This document shows, one piece after another, positions 1,352 through 31,633 of a stretch of DNA of 32,332 nt (its first letter is position 1; the number at the start of each line of letters is the position of its first letter). Under the pieces are notes generated by a model. It did no database searches. It was not told where the DNA came from and saw only the letters and a list, made by a program, of their open reading frames with translations. Position numbers and translations under genes: made by a program. Source of the stretch: Octopus bimaculoides (taxonomy: Eukaryota); contig NC_068986.1 of assembly GCF_001194135.2 (NCBI RefSeq), positions 15,807,274 through 15,839,605 of the forward strand, given 5' to 3'.

Positions 1352-2272
1352 TTATAATTTCGTGTCAATATAATGTATATTGCGTCTGTTTCTTCTCTTG
1401 TGTTTGAAACACATTGTTTTTAGTATTTCACGAAATTTTTTGCTAACTATGAAATACAATACAAAGTTCAAACAATTATTCATTATAGCTAGCAGACCCA
1501 GTAATAATACAATGCCATCAAAGAAGCAATTGGAAAATATTACGAGAAAAAAATATATGGAAGAAGGAAATGTGGTAAACAAAAATACAAGATTTATAGC
1601 AATTACAATGTAAACTGTATTCCGATTTTGAGTTGCAACATTTCGAAGAGAATTCTGACCGAGGTTTGGTCGTTTGTGTAATTTATAAATCAATGTAACA
1701 GAGCTTACAGCTAAAACTACTGCAGGTATAAATGAATAAATGATCATAGAGAGCAGGAAAACATATTTGTAATTTTGTATTAGATTATATGTTACGATGT
1801 ATGCTACAACAACAGTTATAAGAAGACTGACGAGTACAATGTATGAGGTGAGGTTTATCTTAGAATAACTCCGGGAAAATGGGTTACAAACTGCCAAGAG
1901 CCGGTCAATAGAAATAGTGACAGTTATCCAGGAGGAATATATAAATAATACACAAATGAGCAGGTTGAGTGGATCATCGCCAAAGACTGATATGTTTGCG
2001 ATTGAATATTTCAAATAAAATGATACCCAAATGAACCTTGCAGAATATAACAAGATTAAAAAAGTATCGACAATAAGAAGACTAAGAAGATACGGATTAA
2101 TTTTAGATTGATGTATGGACTTCTTGCAAAATATTCCAATAGTTGTTAAATTGCCAATAATTCCAAAAGTTAACAATATTACTGAACCGTACCGCACAGA
2201 GTAAATGACACCATCATGTGTAATAGGAATTACGTAGTTACAGTTGTTAAATGTGGCTTCATTGAAATCCAT
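1352..2272 (-). CDS. intronless class A (rhodopsin-like) GPCR, 306 aa; orphan, FMRFamide-receptor/srw-like, candidate chemoreceptor
   Basis: Seven hydrophobic segments. TM1 GIIGN, TM2 LLIVD, TM3 YSSW..ISIDRLLAVCNP (DRY variant), TM5 YSFIP, TM6 FLFTTFP, TM7 NNCLNFVLY (NPxxY variant), helix 8 KKFREIL. The ORF is uninterrupted. Confidence 0.93.
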   Translation of the reverse strand: MDFNEATFNNCNYVIPITHDGVIYSVRYGSVILLTFGIIGNLTTIGIFCKKSIHQSKINPYLLSLLIVDTFLILLYSARFIWVSFYLKYSIANISVFGDDPLNLLICVLFIYSSWITVTISIDRLLAVCNPFSRSYSKINLTSYIVLVSLLITVVVAYIVTYNLIQNYKYVFLLSMIIYSFIPAVVLAVSSVTLIYKLHKRPNLGQNSLRNVATQNRNTVYIVIAINLVFLFTTFPSSIYFFLVIFSNCFFDGIVLLLGLLAIMNNCLNFVLYFIVSKKFREILKTMCFKHKRRNRRNIHYIDTKL

Positions 2273-6243: not shown

Positions 6244-6345
6244 NNNNNNNNNNNNNNNNNNNNNNNNNNNNNNNNNNNNNNNNNNNNNNNNNNNNNNNNN
6301 NNNNNNNNNNNNNNNNNNNNNNNNNNNNNNNNNNNNNNNNNNNNN

Positions 6346-6437
<92 letters not shown>

Positions 6438-6572
6438 TGTGGATGCATGCTTATATGTATTCATTATCCTCTGTGTAATAACCTATTAACATGCATTTTT
6501 ATGGTTATTGGCTACAATACAGAACAGAAATAGACCTGGATCATATATAATTATATCATACAGTTTTTTGGC

Positions 6573-6845
6573 AGTCATTTTCGTAAGTTTGTCATTCGAT
6601 TTGATAATCGGGTCATTCAAAGTCGAGAAACAAAATTTAGCGCCATGAAATTAGTCAATTCAAATTCGTCATTCGGTCATTAAATTTCGCACTTTGGTAA
6701 AAAAATTTAGCATTTGCAAAATTCAAATTAAAATGCCCTTCGAGGGCATTCAAATTAGTCGGTATGCGAAGAAGCCTCTTCTCAAGCATTCAAATTCGCT
6801 TCGGTGTAATCTATTTAACACTTCGATCAATCAAATTAGCACACT
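6573..6845. repeat. degenerate array of a CATTCAAATT(C/A)G-like motif with an internal hairpin
   Basis: About 9 variably spaced motif copies. Perfect 8-bp stem AATGCCCT-tcg-AGGGCATT at 6732-6750. Confidence 0.55.
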
Positions 6846-7191
6846 AGCTCTTTTGGTTCTATCTCATCATCATTGTTATCATAATCATGTGTTTTCATCT
6901 ATTGCTTATGATTTAAGTACTCTGTAGTGCCCGTGTCTTCGCAATGTATTCTTTTATTATTACATGGTTACATGTATTTACTGTTAATCATTTCAGAAAA
7001 TCGTATTACAGTCTTTTCAATCTTTTTAAAGACACTCACAACAAAGAATGCTCATTTTCTTTCAGTTTGAATATATTATGTTGAGATATCTGTTCCTCCT
7101 TTGCATAATATATTTTGTTGGGATAAGTATATATTTCTTTGATTTTGTATTTTTTCTTTTATTGAGGAAATGGTGCTATGTACCTAAGATA

Positions 7192-7574
7192 GTGGAGGCG
7201 CAATGGCCCAGTGGTTAGGGCAGCGGACTCGTGGTCATAGGATCGCGGTTTCGATTCCCAGACCGAGCGTTGTGAGTGTTTATTGAGCGAAAACACCTAA
7301 AGCTCTACGGGGCTCAGGCAGGGGATAGTGGCGAACCCTGCTGTACTCTTTCACCACAACGTTCGTTCACTCTTACTTCCTGTTTCTGCTGTGCCTGTAA
7401 TTCAAAGGGTCAGCTTTGTTATACTGTGTCATGCTGAATATCTCCGAGAACTACGTTAAGGTTACACGTGTCTGTGGAGTGCTCAGCCACTTGACGTTAA
7501 TTTCACGAGCAGGCTGTTCCGTTGATCGGATCAACTGGAACCCTCGACGTCGTAAGTGACTGAGTGCCAACAAC
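7192..7574 (+). mobile_element. full-length tRNA-derived SINE, family I
   Basis: A box tggcccagtgg and B box ggtttcgattccc. TSD gtacctaagata / gtccctaagata (7180-7191 and 7575-7586). Paralogous copies at 18214 and 26377. Confidence 0.92.
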
Positions 7575-7589
7575 GTCCCTAAGATAATT

Positions 7590-8560
7590 ATTGATTTACA
7601 ATCTGGATAAGGAGACTTCGTCTAAGAGGATTTCGCCCTCTGTCTTCTGGCGGTTGAGGCAACTCGGGAGGTAGATCTGAGTGTGTCTATACAAATGAAC
7701 ACAACTTTCTGGAGTGATAGCGTCGACTTTATGCCTTACGAGCTGTTGTATGACAATTGCTCGAAATTGTCGCACATAAAATAGGCTGATTCATCCGCTA
7801 GAAATATGTTTGCGTATGTTCGGACTGTTCTCATCAAGAACTCCTCGAAAGACTGGTGAACCAGACCGAGTTCTCCCGACACTATCGGGAATATAGCAAT
7901 TATTGGATTATTATGCAGGAGACAAATACCACGGTCGATTATTACACCGTACCTCTTTTGCAGCTTTTTTTCCCACGCTGACGGTTGACAACTCAGTGAA
8001 TAGTAACGCCTCTAGGGGCTCATCCGAATGACCCCCTGATCCAAATGTTGTATCTACATTTATCAATGAATGCGCAATGGACGATGTCGTCTTCTTCCAT
8101 GAATCAATGCGCGTACTCATATCCAGAGTTCTTGGGACATTTGTTGCGTATGGGAAGTCTTCGACCAACTTCATAGTTATCACCATCCCATCTACTGCCC
8201 GTGAGACTGCAGACACAGAAACAGGCAACTTTCCGGGCAGTGATGCCTCTAAGTGCCTCTTCATCCGTTGAAGGGTTGTGAGGGGGTTGGCATCAATACT
8301 CACCTGAAGTCTGGCTCATATTTCCTCATCGGCCTTAACGTGGTGGTCACCTCCCCTGGGCAAATTGTGGCGCCATCCAGAAAGTAGGTAGGTCGCAACT
8401 ATAGATCGAGGACTACTTCTTTTAATGCCAAGGGTGTCTGACAGTTTCAGGTAATCGGTTTGATGTCCCTTGAAGTCGTCAACTAGCCTTGCCTTACCTT
8501 CGTCGGTATACGTATGTGCCTTCGCATGGCTCCATGATTGCAAATTGGTGTTAGAAAGGG
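7590..8560 (-). mobile_element. decayed IS630/Tc1-type transposase, interrupted by a GPCR fragment
   Basis: HTH region LSDTLGIKRSS..SIVATY..LPRGG..DEE..DANPLTTL..VSVSAVSRA..ITMKLVED.P..NVPRT. First catalytic Asp in FIDKCRYNIW (8062-8064), then RQRGKK. After the insert it resumes VSGELGLVH..FEEFL..YFMCDN (second Asp, 7769-7771). Confidence 0.8.
7883..7961 (+). pseudogene. 79-bp GPCR gene fragment (TM1-ICL1-start of TM2)
   Basis: Translates IGNIAIIGLLCRRQIPRSIITPYLFC versus IGNIAVIGLLCRKQMPRSNITPYLFC in GPCR2. Hand alignment to 13889-13967 gives 72/79 nt identity with no indels. Confidence 0.92.
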
Positions 8561-8779
8561 GGATAAAAAATGGCACTGATGCCGACCGGTTGCGAAGATT
8601 GCAATGAAAAAGATTTTCGAGGAGAGAAGAATCACCACATTTATTTTTTCCTTGTAAACATAAAATTTGCATTGCAAAACATGCCATTTACATTTGTCAT
8701 TTTCAACATTCACTTCATAGAATGTGAGTAAAAACACACATATATAATTATTGCTAAATTTAATAAAGTTATTCCGATG

Positions 8780-8782
<3 letters not shown>

Positions 8783-8865
<83 letters not shown>

Positions 8866-9359
8866 TATAACAAGATTAGAAGTGTTATCATGTGCATTGT
8901 TTTGTCTTGGTATAAAAGAGGGGCTTAATACCACAGATTTGCTTGGAAGTTGTTTGACCTTCAACAGTTGAGCATGTCCCTTGGGGTCTGATGATATGTG
9001 CATCTCCGATCATGAGCAGAAGTAGTGGGGGAGCATCATAGCCATATGTTAAGAGGAATTCTTTGGGGTTTGAATAATTCACTTTAGAAACATGGGTGTT
9101 TTGCTCAACATCCTTAAACAAACCTTATTCAGGGACCTTTTGAGCAGGATGGGCTACTCGACCTGAAGAAAATTCTAACTGGGCTCCACCTGCGAGGTCA
9201 TGCGCTGTTTATCTTGATATGAGATCACCATGTCGCGCACATATGGTTATGATGCATGTGCCTGGTGTACCCTTATCAGACTGGTAGTCAGGATGGGTAT
9301 ATTCGGCTTCGTACATTTTACCCCAGTGTCAATTTGATGATATGCATTGCTCTCTCACT
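8783..9359 (+). mobile_element. (AAT)n run plus body of a long tRNA-SINE (family V); no head recognisable
   Basis: The body (8873-9359) closely matches 11415-11930. Confidence 0.8.
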
Positions 9360-9459
9360 NNNNNNNNNNNNNNNNNNNNNNNNNNNNNNNNNNNNNNNNN
9401 NNNNNNNNNNNNNNNNNNNNNNNNNNNNNNNNNNNNNNNNNNNNNNNNNNNNNNNNNNN

Positions 9460-9707: not shown

Positions 9708-10525
9708 ACGGATCTATTTTAAAACGGGGGCGCCAGTATTTTCTTAACGAAACACAAACGAAACACTTTGAAACTTGGGGCACTAGTAGAATGTGTCATA
9801 TAAAACATCTTTTACTCTTAGTCTTCTTAACAAAATAAAAAAGGAATTCGCAAGTTATTCCATGTTAAAGTTGTCGTATTTCTGTAATTTCAACCAATCA
9901 CTGACGTCTATTCAGTTCAAGAGAGTTACTGCTGGGCGGTCATAAAAATGTTATTCCCTGTGACATATTTCATCCGGTTTAATCGTAATTTATAAGCATA
10001 TATTGTCTATGTNNNNNNNNNNNNNNNNNNNNNNNNNNNNNNNNNNNNNNNNNNNNNNNNNNNNNNNNNNNNNNNNNNNNNNNNNNNNNNNNNNNNNNNN
10101 NNNNNNNNNNNNNNNNNNNNNNNNNNNNNNNNNNNNNNNNNNNNNNNNNNNNNNNNNNNNNNNNNNNNNNNNNNNNNNNNNNNNNNNNNNNNNNNNNNNN
10201 NNNNNNNNNNNNNNNNNNNNNNNNNNNNNNNNNNNNNNNNNNNNNNNNNNNNNNNNNNNNNNNNNNNNNNNNNNNNNNNNNNNNNNNNNNNNNNNGATAT
10301 ACACCGTTACAGCGCTAACTGTTTTCAACTGAATAGACGTCAATGATTAGTAGAAATTATCGAAATAAGACAATTTTTTACATGAAATAAATTCGAATAC
10401 AAAAATATTTTTCTGTTCTATAACATAAAATAGATAAGTATACGAAGTTTGAAAGTCTTTCGGTACCCAAAACACTACATAAAACATAAATGAAAACTGG
10501 CTCCCCCATTTTAAAATAGATCCGT
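9708..10525. mobile_element. non-autonomous TIR DNA transposon
   Basis: 30-bp TIRs acggatctattttaaaa(c/t)ggggg(c/a)gccagt with 28/30 identity. Internal inverted tgacgtctattcagtt / aactgaatagacgtca. AGTG on both flanks. Contains an N gap. Confidence 0.85.
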
Positions 10526-11306: not shown

Positions 11307-11951
11307 GGGCATATGGCGTAGTGGTTAAGAGCAGGGCTACTAACCCCAAGATTTCGAAATCGATTTCATGAAATGACCTGAATAATAATGATAATAATAA
11401 TAGTAATAATAATAGGGCTACAGCAAATATTCTGCTTAATACCACAGATTTGCTTGTCAATTGTTTGACCTTAACCAGTTGAGCATGTTCCTTGGTGGCT
11501 GACGATATGGGCATCTCTGATCACGAGCAGAAGTAGTGGGGGAGCATCATAGCCATGTGTTGAGAGGAGNNNNNNNNNNCACGAGCAGAAGTAGTGGGGG
11601 AGCATCATAGCCATGTGTTGAGAGGAGTTCTTTGGGGTTTGAATAATTCACCTTTGGAAACATGGGTGTTTTGCTCAACATCCTTAAACAAACCTTACTC
11701 AGGGACCTTTTGAGCGGGATGGGCTACTCGACCTGAAAAAAATTCTAACTGGGCCCCACCTGTGAGGTCATGCGCTTTTTATATTGATATGAGATCACCA
11801 TGTCGCGCACATATAGTTGTGATGCATGTGCCTGGTGTACCCTTATCAGACGGGTAGTCATGATAGGTATATTGGGCTTTGTATACTTTACCCCAGTGTC
11901 ACTTTGATGGCATGCACTGCTCTCTCACTCAATAATAATAATAATAATAAT
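11307..11951 (+). mobile_element. long tRNA-headed SINE (family V) with internal and terminal (AAT)n
   Basis: Head atggcgtagtggttaagagc..ctactaaccccaagatttcgaaatcgatttc, an AAT run, a body of about 500 bp shared with 8873-9359, and an AAT tail at 11931-11951. Confidence 0.82.
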
Positions 11952-13135: not shown

Positions 13136-14062
13136 TCAGTTTACTTCTTCTATATTAATGAGTTGAATGCCAGGTTGAAGGTCCTTTATGTATACTATTT
13201 TTCTCTTATTCGTCTTCTTACAACATATTTGCTTCAAGTTTTCGCGAAACATTTTACTGGCAACGAAGTACAAAATAAAGTTCAGACAGTTATTAGCACA
13301 AGCTAACATATCCAATGATAAGTATGTCACAGAATCCAAGCATCCATTTAGTGTTATTACGAAGTAGTAAATTGACACAGGGAATGTCGTCAACAAAAAT
13401 ATAATATTTATGGTAACAACAATGTAAATGCTGTTCCTGAATCGTCCTGAAGAGTTGTGTTGTAAATTTTGGCCAAGTTTTGGTTGTTTAAGTAATTTGT
13501 AAGTCATAATAATAGAGCTGATAATTAAAAACACTGCTGGTATGAACGAATATATTACAGTTGAAGCAAGAAAAATTTGTGTAAGGCCTTTTAGTAATAC
13601 TATTAAGATTGCATAAATTACGCAATTGCAACAGAGAAGTGTCAACATTACAATATACGGAATGCAGGGCTTAGGGGAAATATGGCGAGAAAATGGGCTG
13701 TAAACTGCGAGTAGACGTTCCATTGATATAATGACTGTTAACCACGAAGAATATATATTTATAATAAAAACGATGTAAATAAAATATTTACTGGTCAGAA
13801 ATGTTTTTCTCTGGTCCCCAAAAGGCACATAATTCATCATAATTCTTGGATAATTTCCCCATAGTGCAAGTAAATCTACAACAAGCAGGCAAAAGAGGTA
13901 TGGTGTAATATTCGACCGAGGCATTTGTTTCCTGCATAATAATCCAATAACTGCTATATTACCGATACTGCCAAAAATCATGATCATTAACGAAACATAA
14001 CGTATAGTAGTGTTATTTAAAACAACTGGTACACCATCCGATATGAAGCTACAGTTTGTCAT
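13136..14062 (-). CDS. intronless class A GPCR, 308 aa from the first in-frame ATG; paralog of 1352-2272; N-terminus possibly longer
   Basis: 7 TM segments. Motifs GSIGN, LLVVD, YSSW..ISMERLLAVYSP, YSFIP, FLLTTFP, NNCLNFILY, KMFRENL. Colinear with GPCR1. Confidence 0.93.
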   Translation of the reverse strand: MTNCSFISDGVPVVLNNTTIRYVSLMIMIFGSIGNIAVIGLLCRKQMPRSNITPYLFCLLVVDLLALWGNYPRIMMNYVPFGDQRKTFLTSKYFIYIVFIINIYSSWLTVIISMERLLAVYSPFSRHISPKPCIPYIVMLTLLCCNCVIYAILIVLLKGLTQIFLASTVIYSFIPAVFLIISSIIMTYKLLKQPKLGQNLQHNSSGRFRNSIYIVVTINIIFLLTTFPVSIYYFVITLNGCLDSVTYLSLDMLACANNCLNFILYFVASKMFRENLKQICCKKTNKRKIVYIKDLQPGIQLINIEEVN

Positions 14063-17149: not shown

Positions 17150-17474
17150 GGAGCACTCCGTTGGTTACGACGACGGGTGTCCCAGCTGATACGATCAACA
17201 GAACAGCTTGCTCGTGAAATTAACGTGCAAGTGACTGAGCAATCCACAGACACGTGTACCCTAAACGTAGTTCTCAGGGATATTCAGCGTGACACAGCGT
17301 GTTGCAAGGCAGGCACTTTGAAATACAGGTACAACTCATTTTTGCCAGGTGAGTGGACTGCGGCAACGTGAAATAAAGTGTCTTGCTCAAGGACACAACG
17401 CGTCGCCGGGAATTGAACTCATGACCTTACAATTGCGAGCCGAATGCCCTAACCACTAAGCCACGCGCCTTCAC
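17150..17474 (-). mobile_element. full-length tRNA-SINE, family II
   Basis: The reverse complement has A box tggcttagtgg, B box gagttcaattccc and CORE-like gttgtgtccttgagcaagacacttt. TSD cataggtacat / catagatacat (17139-17149 and 17477-17487). The 3' half is shared with family I. Confidence 0.9.
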
Positions 17475-18213
17475 TACATAGATACATAAATACACACATA
17501 CACACTGCAAAGACACACACACACACACATGCACATAGACATAATTAACTTTTGAAACGCCGAGGATGAGAAAGGTAGATGTGAGAAATACGTAACTTTA
17601 GGGAAAAAGGGAGTAGGTGACATTTCTGCTGTCCATTACAAAGTTGCTACTAGTAGCCTGCTGGAGCTACTTGCAGCACCTTTATTTATATTATCAGCAG
17701 ATATTATTATAAACAGCAATATCCTTGTAGTAAAGATTGTTTGCCAACCTAATATGGCAGTCCCGGTTTAGGACTAATGTTGCTGTAATTTAACCCCAGG
17801 AGACATCGTCTCCAGCTGGCTATGCAACACGATCTGTGTCCTTATAATTTCGAACAAGGGATTCTAGCAACCCCACTCAGCTCAAAACAATATCTGTGTA
17901 TCGCGATTTCTAGGTTATTTCCCTTCATCAGCACAGAAAAAAATACTCGACTAGAGTGGCGCTGCCAAATTCCCGTTCGAAATATATAGTTTTAAAGTGA
18001 CATCTAGTCACTGATTTTTAAATTAGAAAATCTCACGTTGTGAGATTTAAAAATAGAGATTTTAAAATTTTCTAATTACATCCTTATATGTATATGAGAG
18101 TTTGTGAGCGCGTGTGTGCGTCTGTGCAATGAAAAGAGGGGAAAAAGTATCTTTAATGTAAATACATCACTATAACCACTGTATGTTAGATTTCAATATG
18201 ATTAAGATGACAT

Positions 18214-18597
18214 GGAGGTGCAATAGCCCAGTGGTTAAGGCAGCGGACTCACGGTTATAGGATCGCGGTTTCGAATCCCAGACCGGGCGTTGTGTGTGTT
18301 TATTAAGAGAAAACACCTAAAGCTCCCAGAGGCTCCGGCAGGGAATGGTAGCGAACCCTGATGTACTCTTTCACCACAACTTTCTCTCACTCTTACTTCC
18401 TGTTTCTGTTGTGCTTGTAATTCAAACGGTCAGCCTTGTCACACTGTGTCACGCTGAATCTCCCCGAGAACTACGTTAAGGGTACACGTGTCTGTGGAGT
18501 GCTCAGCCACTTGCACGTTAATTTCACGAGCAGGCTGTACCGTTGATCGGATCAACTAGAACCCTCCACGTCGTAAGCGACGGAGTGCCAACCATAT
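18214..18597 (+). mobile_element. full-length tRNA-SINE, family I
   Basis: A and B boxes present. TSD gatgacat (18206-18213 and 18598-18605). Colinear with 7192-7574. Confidence 0.92.
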
Positions 18598-19290: not shown

Positions 19291-20135
19291 TACGCGTTCG
19301 CCACTGGGGGTGAACAACTTGTATAGGATTCTGAGAATTATGCTTTCCTTACAGTTCGTGCTGACGAGAAACAGATATTTTCGGTAAGGGGATACTAATT
19401 TGGAAACTAGTACACGAATAATAATTTCTTNNNNNNNNNNNNNNNNNNNNNNNNNNNNNNNNNNNNNNNNNNNNNNNNNNNNNNNNNNNNNNNNNNNNNN
19501 NNNNNNNNNNNNNNNNNNNNNNNNNNNNNNNNNNNNNNNNNNNNNNNNNNNNNNNNNNNNNNNNNNNNNNNNNNNNNNNNNNNNNNNNNNNNNNNNNNNN
19601 NNNNNNNNNNNNNNNNNNNNNNNNNNNNNNNNNNNNNNNNNNNNNNNNNNNNNNNNNNNNNNNNNNNNNNNNNNNNNNNNNNNNNNNNNNNNNNNNNNNN
19701 NNNNNNNNNNNNNNNNNNNNNNNNNNNNNNNNNNNNNNNNNNNNNNNNNNNNNNNNNNNNNNNNNNNNNNNNNNNNNNNNNNNNNNNNNNNNNNNNNNNN
19801 NNNNNNNNNNNNNNNNNNNNNNNNNNNNNNNNNNNNNNNNNNNNNNNNNNNNNNNNNNNNNNNNNNNNNNNNNNNNNNNNNNNNNNNNNNNNNNNNNNNN
19901 NNNNNNNNNNNNNNNNNNNNNNNNNNNNNNNNNNNNNNNNNNNNNNNNNNNNNNNNNNNNNNNNNNNNNNNNNNNNNNNNNNNNNNNNNNNNNNNNNNNN
20001 NNNNNNNNNNNNNNNNNNNNNNNNNNNNNNNNNNNNNNNNNNNNNNNNNNNNNNNNNNNNNNNNNNNNNNNNNNNNNNNNNNNNNNNNNNNNNNNNNNNN
20101 NNNNNNNNNNNNNNNNNNNNNNNNNNNNNNNNNNN

Positions 20136-21536: not shown

Positions 21537-22126
21537 ATGTTATGGTCAGCCAAAAGAATATCTCTGTCTAAGAAGAGAGAGACAGCTGCAGAAAGGGAAG
21601 CATACCAAGAAATGATCAGACTGTACACTACAAAAGCCAGAGCATCACAAAGTAATGAACAGAGGTATGCACAACTGACAAGGAGTAGGATATCCACAGC
21701 AGAACAAAGAGCAGTTGTAACAGCTCAAAGAAGCAACTTCTATGAAGCAGCTTTGAATTATGTTCTGGCAGTTCATTATGCAGATGACATTTATGTTTCC
21801 ATTGGTGCACTGCCAACTGAGTGCATACATAGTAAAGCAAGGAGGTGGCCTGGAGAGACACCTGCACTGCGCTGCAGTGGTGAAAAGGTTAAACTCCCTG
21901 CAATCGTCAACCTCCAGAACTATTGAAGAAACTGCTGCCATCAACTGACCAAGATTCCAAGCATTTCCAAAAAAAATTAGACAATAGAACGCTGCATTAC
22001 GGATAGCATCATTTGGAGCCACAAGGGATTTAACTGAGCCAGGATTCATGCAAACTTTCAAGATCCAAGGTCAGGTTTATCATTGGATTGTCTCACTACT
22101 CCTGTCTAACGAAACGCCAGAATCGG
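21537..22126 (+). pseudogene. Helitron RepHel N-terminal coding remnant
   Basis: YEAALNY..YADDIYVSIGALPTECIHSKARRWPGETPALRCSGEKVKLP, then after a frameshift PPELLKKLL...SKHF..IRQ*NAALRIASFGA...GFMQTFKIQGQVYHWIVSLL. Confidence 0.88.
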
Positions 22127-23916: not shown

Positions 23917-24556
23917 ATTTATCTATTTATTTATTTATTTATGGGTTTCAGCCGAAGTGGCTGCGGTCATGCTGGAGCACCACCATGACTTTCCATCTTT
24001 ATCCTCTGCTCTCTTCACGTTCCTTCCATGGCTCTTCTCCCCCACCTGATATAGTCCTATCAAGAGTTTTGACGGCATATCTGGTGTATAAGAGAATTTG
24101 ACATCGCTGCCCTCAACTGTGTCTCAGTTCGAGCCATCGGTTCGTCTGGTATCGTGGAGAGGAATGTGTCGAGTTTTGCTTTGAAGACCTCTATATCCAT
24201 GTCTTTCAGGTCTCTCAAATGTTTTGGCAGGGCATTACAGATCTGAGGTCCTCTGAAATCGAGGCTGTTACAGTAACTTGTTCTTATGTAAGATGCAGTG
24301 GACGGAACCCATGGTACCACGCAGGGGTGACCTGTGCGGGAATTCGTGTAGTACTTGATGCCAAAGTTTGGTACCAGTCCTTCCAGAATTTTCCATATGC
24401 AAATTATTACATATCTCTCCCGCCTGCGCTCCAGGCAGTAGAGACCTAGTGCCTTCAGTCGCTCTCTGTAGTTCATCTGCTGGACTGTGGCGATCTTTTT
24501 TGTATAGTGACGCTGAATTGCCTCGAGTTCTGCTGTCCGGTTGAGTTTCGCTGTCC
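23917..24556 (-). mobile_element. CR1/L2-group LINE 3' end (ORF2 C-terminus, 3' UTR, (AATA)n tail)
   Basis: ELEAIQRHYTKKI...MNYRERLKALGLYCLERRRERY...FRGPQICNALPKHLRD...FKAKLDTFLSTIPDEP. Tail ggtggtgctccagcatgaccgcag..ctgaaac plus (taaa)n. Confidence 0.9.
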
Positions 24557-24854: not shown

Positions 24855-26376
24855 TTAATTTTAAACTTTATATATATGTATATATATAAACACANNNNNN
24901 NNNNNNNNNNNNNNNNNNNNNNNNNNNNNNNNNNNNNNNNNNNNNNNNNNNNNNNNNNNNNNNNNNNNNNNNNNNNNNNNNNNNNNNNNNNNNNNNNNNN
25001 NNNNNNNNNNNNNNNNNNNNNNNNNNNNNNNNNNNNNNNNNNNNNNNNNNNNNNNNNNNNNNNNNNNNNNNNNNNNNNNNNNNNNNNNNNNNNNNNNNNN
25101 NNNNNNNNNNNNNNNNNNNNNNNNNNNNNNNNNNNNNNNNNNNNNNNNNNNNNNNNNNNNNNNNNNNNNNNNNNNNNNNNNNNNNNNNNNNNNNNNNNNN
25201 NNNNNNNNNNNNNNNNNNNNNNNNNNNNNNNNNNNNNNNNNNNNNNNNNNNNNNNNNNNNNNNNNNNNNNNNNNNNNNNNNNNNNNNNNNNNNNNNNNNN
25301 NNNNNNNNNNNNNNNNNNNNNNNNNNNNNNNNNNNNNNNNNNNNNNNNNNNNNNNNNNNNNNNNNNNNNNNNNNNNNNNNNNNNNNNNNNNNNNNNNNNN
25401 NNNNNNNNNNNNNNNNNNNNNNNNNNNNNNNNNNNNNNNNNNNNNNNNNNNNNNNNNNNNNNNNNNNNNNNNNNNNNNNNNNNNNNNNNNNNNNNNNNNN
25501 NNNNNNNNNNNNNNNNNNNNNNNNNNNNNNNNNNNNNNNNNNNNNNNNNNNNNNNNNNNNNNNNNNNNNNNNNNNNNNNNNNNNNNNNNNNNNNNNNNNN
25601 NNNNNNNNNNNNNNNNNNNNNNNNNNNNNNNNNNNNNNNNNNNNNNNNNNNNNNNNNNNNNNNNNNNNNNNNNNNNNNNNNNNNNNNNNNNNNNNNNNNT
25701 ATATATGGAGATACGAAATTGCAAACAGAACTCAATATGTGTATACATCAATTTTATTATGTTATATGTACAAGCTTTTCAGGTTAAGTTTGGGGAATTT
25801 TATGTCTCCTTTTTTCAGCAACAGCTTAATGCACTGGTGAAGAATCAATCTGTTGGAGAGCATAAATAATAAATTTGTGTTTGAGAAAAATATAACTGAC
25901 ATAGAGGACTGGAATACGCGTATCAAGCTGCCGATACCATGACTTAATCTATACAGTTTGAACCCACAAATGAGGGGAAGAAACAACATGGTTGTCATAA
26001 AACCAAGATTCCCTAAACTGCGATGGTGTTTGATTTTGTCTCTAGTGAGACTCGGGTCATCTGCCCCACACGACTGAACAGGGCTTTTGGATATGTGAAG
26101 TTGATAGAAGTAGTTATCAGCGAATTTCTAGGACTTCATTTGCTTCAGTTACCGGTCTCCTAATTCTCCCAAATGCAGTGGAGTGCTATGATCGGGACTC
26201 GGTTAGGAAACGTGCCAGCCACTCTGCCTCCAACAACAGCGCCGTGATTTTGGCCAATATTAAGTAGCTTGAGTAATATATCACAATAACGATTTACCAG
26301 AAAGTAATACTGTCTAACTAGATATGGAATATCTCGCCCTTACTGAAAGCGACCGTATCAAAATATTCAGGTATAT

Positions 26377-27020: not shown

Positions 27021-30008
27021 NNNNNNNNNNNNNNNNNNNNNNNNNNNNNNNNNNNNNNNNNNNNNNNNNNNNNNNNNNNNNNNNNNNNNNNNNNNNNNNN
27101 NNNNNNNNNNNNNNNNNNNNNNNNNNNNNNNNNNNNNNNNNNNNNNNNNNNNNNNNNNNNNNNNNNNNNNNNNNNNNNNNNNNNNNNNNNNNNNNNNNNN
27201 NNNNNNNNNNNNNNNNNNNNNNNNNNNNNNNNNNNNNNNNNNNNNNNNNNNNNNNNNNNNNNNNNNNNNNNNNNNNNNNNNNNNNNNNNNNNNNNNNNNN
27301 NNNNNNNNNNNNNNNNNNNNNNNNNNNNNNNNNNNNNNNNNNNNNNNNNNNNNNNNNNNNNNNNNNNNNNNNNNNNNNNNNNNNNNNNNNNNNNNNNNNN
27401 NNNNNNNNNNNNNNNNNNNNNNNNNNNNNNNNNNNNNNNNNNNNNNNNNNNNNNNNNNNNNNNNNNNNNNNNNNNNNNNNNNNNNNNNNNNNNNNNNNNN
27501 NNNNNNNNNNNNNNNNNNNNNNNNNNNNNNNNNNNNNNNNNNNNNNNNNNNNNNNNNNNNNNNNNNNNNNNNNNNNNNNNNNNNNNNNNNNNNNNNNNNN
27601 NNNNNNNNNNNNNNNNNNNNNNNNNNNNNNNNNNNNNNNNNNNNNNNNNNNNNNNNNNNNNNNNNNNNNNNNNNNNNNNNNNNNNNNNNNNNNNNNNNNN
27701 NNNNNNNNNNNNNNNNNNNNNNNNNNNNNNNNATATATATATATATATAATTTTGTGCGAACTAACTTTCAAACCTAGAGGTATATTCATATGCATTGAC
27801 AAGTAAATTATTTATACACTACGCTGTTTTACGAATTGCACGTTTCCTCTCCGATGGGCATCCTTATGAATGATCCAATGAATAAGAATTACATGGAAAA
27901 TACAGGATCAAGATGATGACAAATACAATATAAAAGGACCAAATAGGACAACCATGCGCATAATTTAAACAGGTAGGAATGCATTTTTCAAAGAATCATG
28001 TTAGCTACATATTTATACACACAAGTATACAATTGGATTCATCGAGGCAATTACTTTCATAGACACGCACAGAGGCTCTCAGACTCATATATCGGCTTAT
28101 TAAAAATATTCCATTCTGTCAGCAAAACTTTGCTTCACTAACCGTAACTAAAATATGGCAGAAAGTTTGTCCCTGTTACAACAGTGATAAGTCGTCAAAG
28201 AAATAACAATTCCAGGCGGTTCAAAAATGATCTGCTCTATAATCTCTGTGAACTTCCGTGGTAGACGCCATTGTTTACGTGATCGAGTACACAGCATATC
28301 AATCCCGCAGGAAAATGTAGAAGGATAGCCTCTCATACAAATATTGATAGAATTTAACGTTTCTTTATAAACAGGTAAATTGCTATATGTTCGAAAGCTA
28401 TATTTCATTGCAGCTGAAACAAACATCCTCAGGTGAGTGAAGCAATTGAAATAGGCTCCTTTTTTCCAATGTACATTTCGATCACTTTCCTCTGCTTCTC
28501 TCCTTCATCAGAAAAAAACACATCATTAAAAAAAAAAGATAGCTAATCAGATTCTTTTATATAATAATGACCATTCTCTTTACTTAAATAATTTCTCCTT
28601 TCATTCTGTACATTCCAAATGACAGATATATACGTTGATTACGAAATATTTTATCGCTTTTTACTAAGACTCAAGGAAGTAGAAACAGCCATTTACGCAT
28701 ATAAATGGTTTATAGGTGTCTATAAATTGTAAGGTTTTTAGAGGAATATACGTCAATAAAAGTCAGTGATATTCATGCATAAGGACTATATGACACACAC
28801 CATTCCATCAAACTTACCATGGAAAAGAATTGGCAATGTTACAAGACAATCAATAAAATACAATTACACATAACATATACATATACACACATGTATAAAT
28901 ATATACGTAGATGTAACATATATGTATACATAAATCACACGTGTGTGTCAGTATATATACATATATTTATATATGTTTATAAAAATTATAGCATGAAATT
29001 AGAGCACAAACCGATTTTCACGTTTATTTTTTTCAAATTTTAAATAAAAGTTAATGTTGCTAACATAAATATTTATCTGAAGATTGTTATAAAACATAAA
29101 AGTAGTTGTGGAATCGCAAGCACTCATCCTGAAATCACAAACAACCATCCCTGAAGAAATCTTTTTTGAGCTATACTTAATGTCACAAATTCTATACAAT
29201 ATATAACCATACAAACAAATAATGGGTACATTTATATATATATACCTCTGTATGTATGTACGTATGTATGCATGTATATGCACACACATGTATATACCTG
29301 TACACACATGCCTTTACATATGTATATACATATATTTATATATATGTGCGTGTTTGTGTTTGTGTGTGTGTGTGTGTATGTGCATATAGCTCATGTAAAC
29401 GTAATATTTCTACTATTTCTAGCAGGTCGAGCTTAGGTTTGTACCATATGAAAACTTAGCCAATCAGATGCTCTCAGACCTTCATGAAATAGCATTTAAT
29501 TCTTACATGTGTATATAGCAATATTTATGTGAACATTTTTTCATACTGAAAAATAAACAGAATGGTGTTGAATTTTTGCTATGCAGGATAAAAACAAAAA
29601 TCTCGCCAAACTTAAAATAGATTATTTTGGTATTCATTTTGTATATTTGTATCACCTATATTTAATGCTGTTTTATCTTACATAAACCTCCATTTGCCTT
29701 ACAAATGACTCGATAGAAAAGGTTTTTGTTGAAGAGGAATACAGATGTTTCAAATTTATACTTTAGCACATCAAACGTCCTCCATTTTTGTGAATTATGA
29801 TTGATTTCACATTGATATCTGGGCCATACAGCTTTGATATAACTCGGTGTCACAAGATGATATTGCCGAAGGAGACTGCATGCATATGAAGGACCTGGAA
29901 GAGAGAGAAAGAAAGAATCAAAGAATTGTTTCAATTATACGCATATAGTAACATAAATGTGTAGAGATATTCAATATACTGTCTCTCTCTTCAGTTGTGT
30001 ACACGGAA

Positions 30009-30590: not shown

Positions 30591-31633
30591 TTATGCATGC
30601 GTACATCAGGAAAATGTTACATTGAATACCATCACTGAAAAATTTTACAATCAATACAATCACTGAAAGATTATGGGAATTTCAGTGCATACAAACTCTC
30701 TAATCTACTACCACACAGACCCCCCCCACTTCACACACATGTATATGTGTATTTATGTTCATGTGTGGTGTGTCGATGTGTGTGTATATCGGGGGGTATG
30801 TGCGTACGTGCGGCAGCTTTCTACGCAACGTCTACTGAAAATGATAATGCAGAAGATAATGGACGGTGTGGTACACTAGTAGAATACTCCAGCACAAGAT
30901 AGCACACTGTGTGTCAGAAACCATATGACCAAGCAAAAAACTACCCAATAAACCAGATTTATGTGATATATCTCTCTATGCGAAATCATTGGCAGCCATT
31001 TTTTTTTTATCAAGAAATTAAGTATATAGATATGTATATGTATATTGTCTCTGAATTATATGTTAATATTGGCGTTCCTAATGATGAGAACTTCGCCTAG
31101 CAAACAATTTTATTTGTTAATTAAATTTCGAAATCTAGGCCTGACTGTAAAATCATGGTAAAAGTTTTTACTTTCATTGCCTTCGAAATTGCTGTGGTTT
31201 TAGACTTTTTGACTGCTCCTATTAGCATGTAAGGCGGCCTGTTAATGGTTACCTCTAATGGTGTTTAAATGTACACTCATTTTATATATATTGATATATG
31301 GATATATNNNNNNNNNNNNNNNNNNNNNNNNNNNNNNNNNNNNNNNNNNNNNNNNNNNNNNNNNNNNNNNNNNNNNNNNNNNNNNNNNNNNNNNNNNNNN
31401 NNNNNNNNNNNNNNNNNNNNNNNNNNNNNNNNNNNNNNNNNNNNNNNNNNNNNNNNNNNNNNNNNNNNNNNNNNNNNNNNNNNNNNNNNNNNNNNNNNNN
31501 NNNNNNNNNNNNNNNNNNNNNNNNNNNNNNNNNNNNNNNNNNNNNNNNNNNTATATATATTTATATATATATTCACACGCACGTGTAAAAACAAATAAAT
31601 ATACGCATAAAGATTCAAACTCATACATACATG

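Follow-up and report, generated by a model that had tools for sequence, protein, structure and literature searches.

A receptor gene fragment inside a decayed Tc1/IS630-type transposase of Octopus bimaculoides looks like an ordinary scar of templated break repair

Among transposons that carry foreign sequence between their terminal inverted repeats (TIRs), the Pack-MULEs of plants hold gene fragments; they frequently occur in multiple copies, move and are transcribed, and their TIRs are intact. Where cut-and-paste elements with internal deletions contain filler DNA, this has been ascribed to abortive gap repair, as proposed for maize Ds elements derived from Ac and for P-element gap repair. 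Abortive gap repair as a source of filler DNA is mentioned in PMC8277862 and PMC3260210. For animals, a survey of 100 genomes attributed single-copy Pack-TIRs to transposition-independent gap filling by template switching (Tan et al. 2021, Nat Commun; PMC8277862). In these cases 56.9% of the donors lay within 15 kb, microhomology and gap had medians of 2 bp and of 4.6% of the element, respectively, the breakpoints were internal and the hosts degenerate, and TcMariner was the second commonest host (PMC8277862). In the Caenorhabditis elegans germline, polymerase-theta end joining is an error-prone route of break repair that leaves small deletions and templated inserts (van Schendel et al. 2015; PMC4490562).

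The window analysed in the present study is a stretch of 32,332 nucleotides of Octopus bimaculoides, apparently outside the genomes surveyed in PMC8277862. An earlier note on this DNA had described GPCR coding sequence filling a gap, in the opposite orientation, inside a transposase on the minus strand, and this arrangement was borne out using both blastn and tblastn. The two minus-strand reads that the note had placed beside the gap, ..RQRGKK (to position 7966) and VSGELGLVH.. (from 7882), were recovered at the same positions. A homology search with the conceptual translation of the minus strand gave five relatives of the flanks, three of which (P0001–P0003) are intact proteins of 363–365 residues containing the Pfam domain DDE_3 (PF13358). 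One of the intact relatives is labelled as a Tc1-like transposase of a sea urchin, and P0001 scored 66.4 bits for DDE_3 against a cut-off of 28.6. The following transposase features were recognized by comparison with P0001, the four individual pieces by tblastn:

7966–8528, minus strand: N-terminal two thirds of the transposase, P0001 residues 4–193, comprising the putative helix-turn-helix region and the first part of DDE_3
8528–8043, minus strand: transposase piece, P0001 residues 4–165, 52% identity
8157–7966, minus strand: transposase piece, P0001 residues 128–193, overlapping the first piece in another frame
7766–7882, minus strand: transposase piece, P0001 residues 200–248, with a 10-residue (30 bp) gap inside
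7635–7766, minus strand: transposase C-terminus, P0001 residues 320–363, following the loss of residues 249–319

On either side of the foreign sequence the alignment to the intact transposases runs to residue 193 and is taken up again at residue 200, without a change of strand or order. The earlier note had named a failure of this colinearity as one of the observations that would speak against its reading; on the alignments obtained, both flanks belong to a single decayed transposase of the Tc1/IS630 type (Pfam DDE_3), colinear along the minus strand. The gap that the note had described in this transposase stands, and we add to it two other deletions inside the gene, of 30 bp and 213 bp, together with a frameshift near 8100–8160 and no fewer than four in-frame stops. 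Both of these deletions lack filler; the first lies at about 7855 (residues 209–218), and the second at 7766 (residues 249–319) includes the third catalytic residue, the catalytic E. The window copy spans the DDE_3 region in that it aligns to P0001 residues 121–248, and the degraded window translation alone gave no Pfam DDE match. Pfam HTH_32 stayed below its cut-off for the window piece (15.7 bits) and for P0001 itself (31.6 against 33.7 bits). By our own count, the second D and the E are separated by 33 residues in intact members of the transposase family (DNARPH...FLNxxE). The closest transposase relative among the matches listed is P0068 (134 amino acids), which is 69% identical to window positions 8507–8127.

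No terminal inverted repeats were detected between the two ends of the element. The best local alignment of 7561–7660 (reverse complement) with 8521–8800 had a score of 20, compared with a mean of 15.8 and a maximum of 33 in shuffles, and the terminal inverted repeats flanked by a TA duplication by which the superfamily is defined were thus not seen on the window copy. This copy is evidently long dead, a relic without recognizable ends. A long (AAT)n microsatellite lies at 8786–8865, just upstream of the relic.

The foreign sequence, the patch, was delimited together with its junctions and presumed donor as follows:

7883–7961, plus strand: patch core, 79 bp of GPCR coding sequence (blastn, tblastn and codon alignment)
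7880–7882, no strand: left junction, CAC, assignable to either partner (tblastn and three-way codon alignment)
7962–7965, no strand: right junction, A-GCT (read from the sequence), receptor identity ending at 7961
7874–7890, no strand: 6-bp inverted repeat spanning the left junction (DNA fold −5.8 kcal/mol, z = −2.3)
13889–13970, minus strand: presumed donor, within the intact GPCR2 ORF and 5.9 kb away from the patch (blastn)

Within the window, blastn aligned patch positions 7880–7961 (plus strand) with 13970–13889 (reverse complement) at 74 of 82 identical bases (90.2%), ungapped and with an E value of 3e-27. The earlier note had given 72 of 79 identical bases to GPCR2 over the range 7883–7961, with no indels and no stops; recomputation returned the same count, again with no indels, and the plus-strand translation of the patch, TIGNIAIIGLLCRRQIPRSIITPYLFC, is open throughout. 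This peptide corresponds to GPCR2 residues 32–58 (tblastn E value of 5e-10), so that the patch is an isolated fragment of 27 codons that runs from the end of TM1 through the first intracellular loop into the start of TM2. It reads in the sense direction on the plus strand and is thus opposite in orientation to the transposase as well as to the donor gene. The captured piece measures 79–85 bp. A relaxed tblastn search of the window with both of its receptors as queries found no other GPCR-like sequence near the patch, which by its sequence is not itself a receptor gene. A transposon inserted into a receptor pseudogene was considered as an origin and rejected, because there is no other receptor-like sequence on either side and the flanks are colinear transposase. 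No structured RNA or tRNA was found at or near the patch site. A 130-codon ORF on the minus strand (7911–8303) consists of decayed transposase running into the antisense strand of the patch.

The earlier note had spoken of an insertion. We carried out an exhaustive profile-free search with P0001, which gave 3075 cluster representatives at E ≤ 0.001; the motif pair QRGxx ... [VI]S..GL was recognizable in 58 of the best 150 of these, as well as in P0001–P0003. Exactly six residues separate the two motifs in 57 of the 58 relatives, and in the nearest ones these read CNVTFA. In the window the same motifs are 83 bp apart (7883–7965), of which 79–82 bp is receptor sequence. The near-invariant spacing implies that the ancestral element was continuous at this point and that 15–18 bp of it has been replaced. 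Thus the foreign piece does lie within the transposase as described; the simple splitting of the gene does not hold, since transposase sequence was lost at the same place. Judged from the spacing, the patch is a replacement rather than a pure insertion, with 15–18 bp (5–6 codons, residues C/NVTFA) lost and ~80 bp gained.

At the left junction, CAC (7880–7882) is the reverse complement of the transposase Val codon GTG, and tblastn places Val200 at 7882–7880, a position at which Val or Ile is conserved in the transposase relatives. The aligned donor bases are CAG in GPCR2 and GAC in the outgroup receptor P0006 (see below), of which only the C at 7882 is common to patch and outgroup. The microhomology at this junction may therefore be 0–3 nt: it is 0 nt if present-day GPCR2, with G opposite 7882, was the template, whereas 3 nt requires the ancestral state that the outgroup implies; 3 nt is the most parsimonious. 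At the right junction, the A at 7962 matches neither partner, the donor continuing with CTGCTT. The following GCT (7963–7965) reads AGC (Ser) on the minus strand, one substitution away from the family Cys codon (motif QRGxx-C-N-V), so that the transposase may resume at either 7965 or, with these three bases left unassigned, at 7968.

The inverted repeat noticed earlier at the left junction, TCCCGA (7874–7879) with TCGGGA (7885–7890), is indeed present. A comparable perfect 6-bp inverted repeat occurred at 2.7% of random window positions and in 1.6% of shuffles, and the hairpin requires G at position 7889, a base that is T in GPCR2 and A in the outgroup. The hairpin is only marginally beyond chance; it is a possible aid to template switching and was not counted as evidence. 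A role as a transposition intermediate was rejected on this marginal excess and because mariner-type elements do not use hairpin intermediates (PMC2800235).

The presumed donor, GPCR2, is an intact, intronless ORF of 308 amino acids on the minus strand (13136–14062), of the rhodopsin/Srw type, which passed Pfam for both 7tm_1 (38.3 bits, cut-off 30.5) and Srw (42.7 bits, cut-off 22.2). A second intact and intronless receptor ORF, GPCR1 (1352–2272, minus strand), is ~41% identical to GPCR2; the two have the same orientation and lie 11 kb apart in the window. Because the identity is only ~41%, they form an old tandem pair and not a recent duplication. When GPCR2 was used as the query of a homology search, only six relatives were returned; the best (P0006) is 73% identical, comes from another organism and is carried on a 1.5-kb Logan contig (L001); it was used as the outgroup. 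The copied segment is the conserved TM1/ICL1/TM2 part found in every receptor of the family. Since it is conserved in all of the receptors and absent from all of the transposase relatives, the transfer went from receptor to transposon, and the reverse direction was rejected on the same grounds.

A three-way codon alignment of the patch, GPCR2 and the outgroup P0006/L001 was used to place the differences. At six sites the patch has GPCR2's state against the outgroup, indicating that the patch descends from the GPCR2 lineage after its split from the outgroup. Six of the eight differences between patch and GPCR2 are derived on the patch lineage (four replacement and two silent); of the remaining two, one is without clear polarity and one, at 7882, is possibly a transposase base. 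The substitutions V>I, K>R and M>I listed in the earlier note are all present, and a fourth change, N>I at 7939, was missing from that list. Random change in the copied segment is expected to be 78% replacement, and four replacements in 6–8 changes did not differ from the neutral expectation (P = 0.40–0.08). The patch's own changes, four replacement against 2–3 silent, fit the neutral decay of a GPCR2 copy, and a third paralog under selection is not needed to account for them.

These data also bear on the possibility that the same mechanism drew on a different template, a third, unseen receptor paralog located nearby or far off, in which case most of the eight differences would pre-date the copying. 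The earlier note had taken the substitutions as paralog-like, an argument that is weakened by the finding that six of the eight are patch-derived in a ratio as under neutral decay (P = 0.08–0.40). Such a template would be in keeping with an identity of only 90.2% to GPCR2, with the silent half of the differences, which slightly exceeds the 22% expected for random change, and with base 7882, which the patch has in common with the outgroup but not with GPCR2; moreover, the family is tandemly arrayed in the window, which makes further paralogs outside it plausible. However, base 7882 is equally assignable to the transposase Val codon, and the silent-to-replacement ratio is not significantly off neutral. 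Four of the six changes that are patch-derived relative to GPCR2 and outgroup hit conserved residues, and the patch sides with GPCR2 against the outgroup at six sites. GPCR1, the only other visible paralog, is far more distant from the patch (79% over 38 bp by blastn), and no donor closer to the patch than GPCR2 was present among the six GPCR2 relatives found. We therefore regard a third paralog as possible though unlikely, and copying from GPCR2 or its immediate ancestor as the better account of the source.

The ends of the patch were read for traces of insertion. They have no target-site duplication and no poly-A in sense orientation, which argues that the patch was not inserted by transposition or retroposition. 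The same absences count against an RNA-templated patch, in which a GPCR2 transcript or cDNA would have bridged the break, or a reverse transcriptase would have switched templates. The donor is coding sequence of an intronless gene, for which DNA and RNA templates look alike, and to this extent an RNA template would suit the data. Only ~80 nt internal to the coding sequence was copied, however, and a close donor in cis is expected for a DNA template and not for an RNA one, so that we hold the RNA route to be extremely unlikely compared with copying from the GPCR2 DNA.

The window has N-runs at 6244–6345, 9360–9459, 10013–10295, 11570–11579, 19431–20135, 24895–25699, 27021–27732 and 31308–31551, and with these eight assembly gaps it is a draft scaffold. 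Since, in addition, transposon copies commonly cause misassembly, reads of a receptor gene might have been threaded into a transposon repeat of a gapped short-read scaffold. Against such an artefact, the entire element, both junctions included, is contained in a single block free of gaps (6346–9359), and 8 of the 82 patch positions differ from GPCR2, showing that the patch was not built from GPCR2 reads. The partners have at most three bases in common at the junctions, too few for a k-mer graph, and two false joins only 80 bp apart would be required. An assembly error is thus very improbable, and we take the patch to be a real feature of the locus.

Other repeats were noted in the window. A SINE-like repeat of ~380 bp with a tRNA-like head has four copies at 77–90% identity, for which there was no call by ARAGORN or Rfam:

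7193–7571, plus strand: SINE-like repeat, adjoining the transposon relic on its 3′ side and unconnected with the patch event
18213–18592, plus strand: SINE-like repeat, 89.7% identity
26400–26734, minus strand: SINE-like repeat
17153–17333, minus strand: SINE-like repeat

By eye, an ORF at 24060–24476 (minus strand) resembles the C-terminal tail of a LINE ORF2 and another at 21537–21926 (plus strand) the Cys-rich N-terminal region of a Helitron (..C..C..GEKVKLP), with no significant Pfam match for either. Many ORFs in the mechanical list are translations of microsatellites or N-runs. The ORFs of GPCR1 and GPCR2, the chimeric ORF in two versions and the transposase ORF upstream had no exact match in the collection searched, and a metagenome scan with the left-junction 26-mer gave 0 matches.

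The locus was compared with the described systems, of which the single-copy animal Pack-TIRs are the most similar. As in those, host sequence is flanked by two pieces of one and the same degenerate TIR transposon, here of the TcMariner type; the donor lies in cis a few kilobases off, microhomology is short or absent, the internal loss is small and the chimera is single-copy within the window. The survey asks that both flanks extend to the consensus termini of the element (at least 10 bp), and it defines a parental copy by an identity of at least 90%, by uniqueness and by the lack of transposons on its own flanks; the presumed parent in the present case is 90.2% identical, unique within the window and inside an intact ORF. 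In contrast with the published cases, the piece is ~80 bp long, which is below the 100-bp cut-off of that study (PMC8277862), and the element termini were not found. By analogy, the case would work like a single-copy Pack-TIR, yet it falls outside the operational definition of the study because of the length of the piece. With Pack-MULEs the locus has in common a gene fragment inside a TIR transposon; the superfamily differs, and the mobility, transcription and TIRs of Pack-MULEs are not features shown here.

The similarity to Pack-TIRs raises the possibility that the receptor piece was captured in a progenitor copy, and that the chimeric non-autonomous element then transposed to other loci. 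The present copy is an internally deleted non-autonomous derivative, of a kind that can be mobilized in trans, and multicopy Pack-TIRs do exist in animals, though as only 1.4% of cases (PMC8277862). Published multicopy Pack-TIRs are always distal to their parents (PMC8277862), whereas the best donor here is only 5.9 kb away. The element has a SINE at its 3′ side and lacks detectable terminal inverted repeats, and no second copy of it or of its junctions was found in the 32-kb window. A mobilized Pack-type element is thus an improbable source of this copy, and an in-place origin of the patch, which the proximity of the donor suggests and for which it is the one basis, is preferred.

Polymerase-theta end joining is resembled in the small deletion (15–18 bp), the minimal homology at the junction (0–3 nt) and the copied insert. 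Inserts of that type are defined by at least 1 nt of homology at the junction and by a template close to the break, and adjoin it, whereas here ~80 nt came from 5.9 kb away and in inverted orientation. A distant and inverted template looks more like strand invasion of, or template switching onto, an ectopic duplex. Abortive gap repair products are resembled in that the element is an internally deleted, non-autonomous copy with three separate deletions, one of which was filled from nearby. Such repair is expected to leave large deletions biased to the element ends, however, and the filled gap measures 15–18 bp and lies mid-element; a small central gap favours a spontaneous break over abortive gap repair following an attempt at excision. 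The other two internal deletions, being without filler, are compatible with either abortive gap repair or later decay. The break may thus have been spontaneous or associated with replication, or the patch may have arisen by abortive gap repair after an excision attempt, two origins that are indistinguishable on the features of this locus.

Taken together, our results point to a single-copy patch that was templated and made in place, through a template switch in the course of break repair, and whose donor was GPCR2, 5.9 kb away, a reading to which we assign a probability of roughly 65%. The earlier note had offered a local repair patch copied from GPCR2 as one of its options, and this is the one best supported, by the descent of the patch from the GPCR2 lineage and by a donor only 5.9 kb off. 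The alignments show what the patch is, how far it extends and how it is oriented, that its flanks are colinear, that 5–6 codons are gone and that it descends from the GPCR2 lineage. What we infer beyond the alignments is that the event took place at this locus, that a template switch was the mechanism and what caused the break. In the proposed course of events, a Tc1/IS630-type transposon copy would already have been resident at a distance of 5.9 kb from GPCR2 before a break, or a stall in synthesis, occurred inside its transposase gene. The growing 3′ end would have left the transposon template and primed on the coding region of GPCR2, or of its immediate ancestor, through ~3 nt of microhomology (CAC), and ~80 nt would have been copied in inverted orientation. 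Synthesis would then have returned to the transposon by a blunt join or with a 1-nt mismatch, at the cost of 15–18 bp (residues C/NVTFA). The product would be filler DNA, a gap filling with no function of its own, that has since drifted ~8–10% from its donor.

We also considered whether the chimera could be more than a scar, either as a mobilized, multicopy Pack element of the Tc1 type, or through RNA antisense to GPCR2, made by read-through transcription on the transposon strand, that leads to small-RNA regulation. If so, a Pack element would spread receptor fragments, or an antisense RNA of 82 nt and 90% identity would act on a chemoreceptor-like gene family; we consider this very doubtful. 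The locus is a new instance of a known process, with no evidence for any new mechanism or gene, nor for an element with a function, and it looks like an ordinary break-repair scar, not like a novel class of mobile element. In practice it serves chiefly as a warning to annotators: the ORF of 130 amino acids at 7911–8303 is a chimera of two non-coding remnants that a gene caller could report as a protein, and the open frame of 27 codons is not a receptor gene. As a case of a templated repair patch it is a clean example, in that the donor, the recipient, the orientation and the lost bases are all readable in a single 32-kb window. Thus cis-biased gap filling, which has been described for vertebrate and fly transposons, would appear to leave its scars in this invertebrate genome too.
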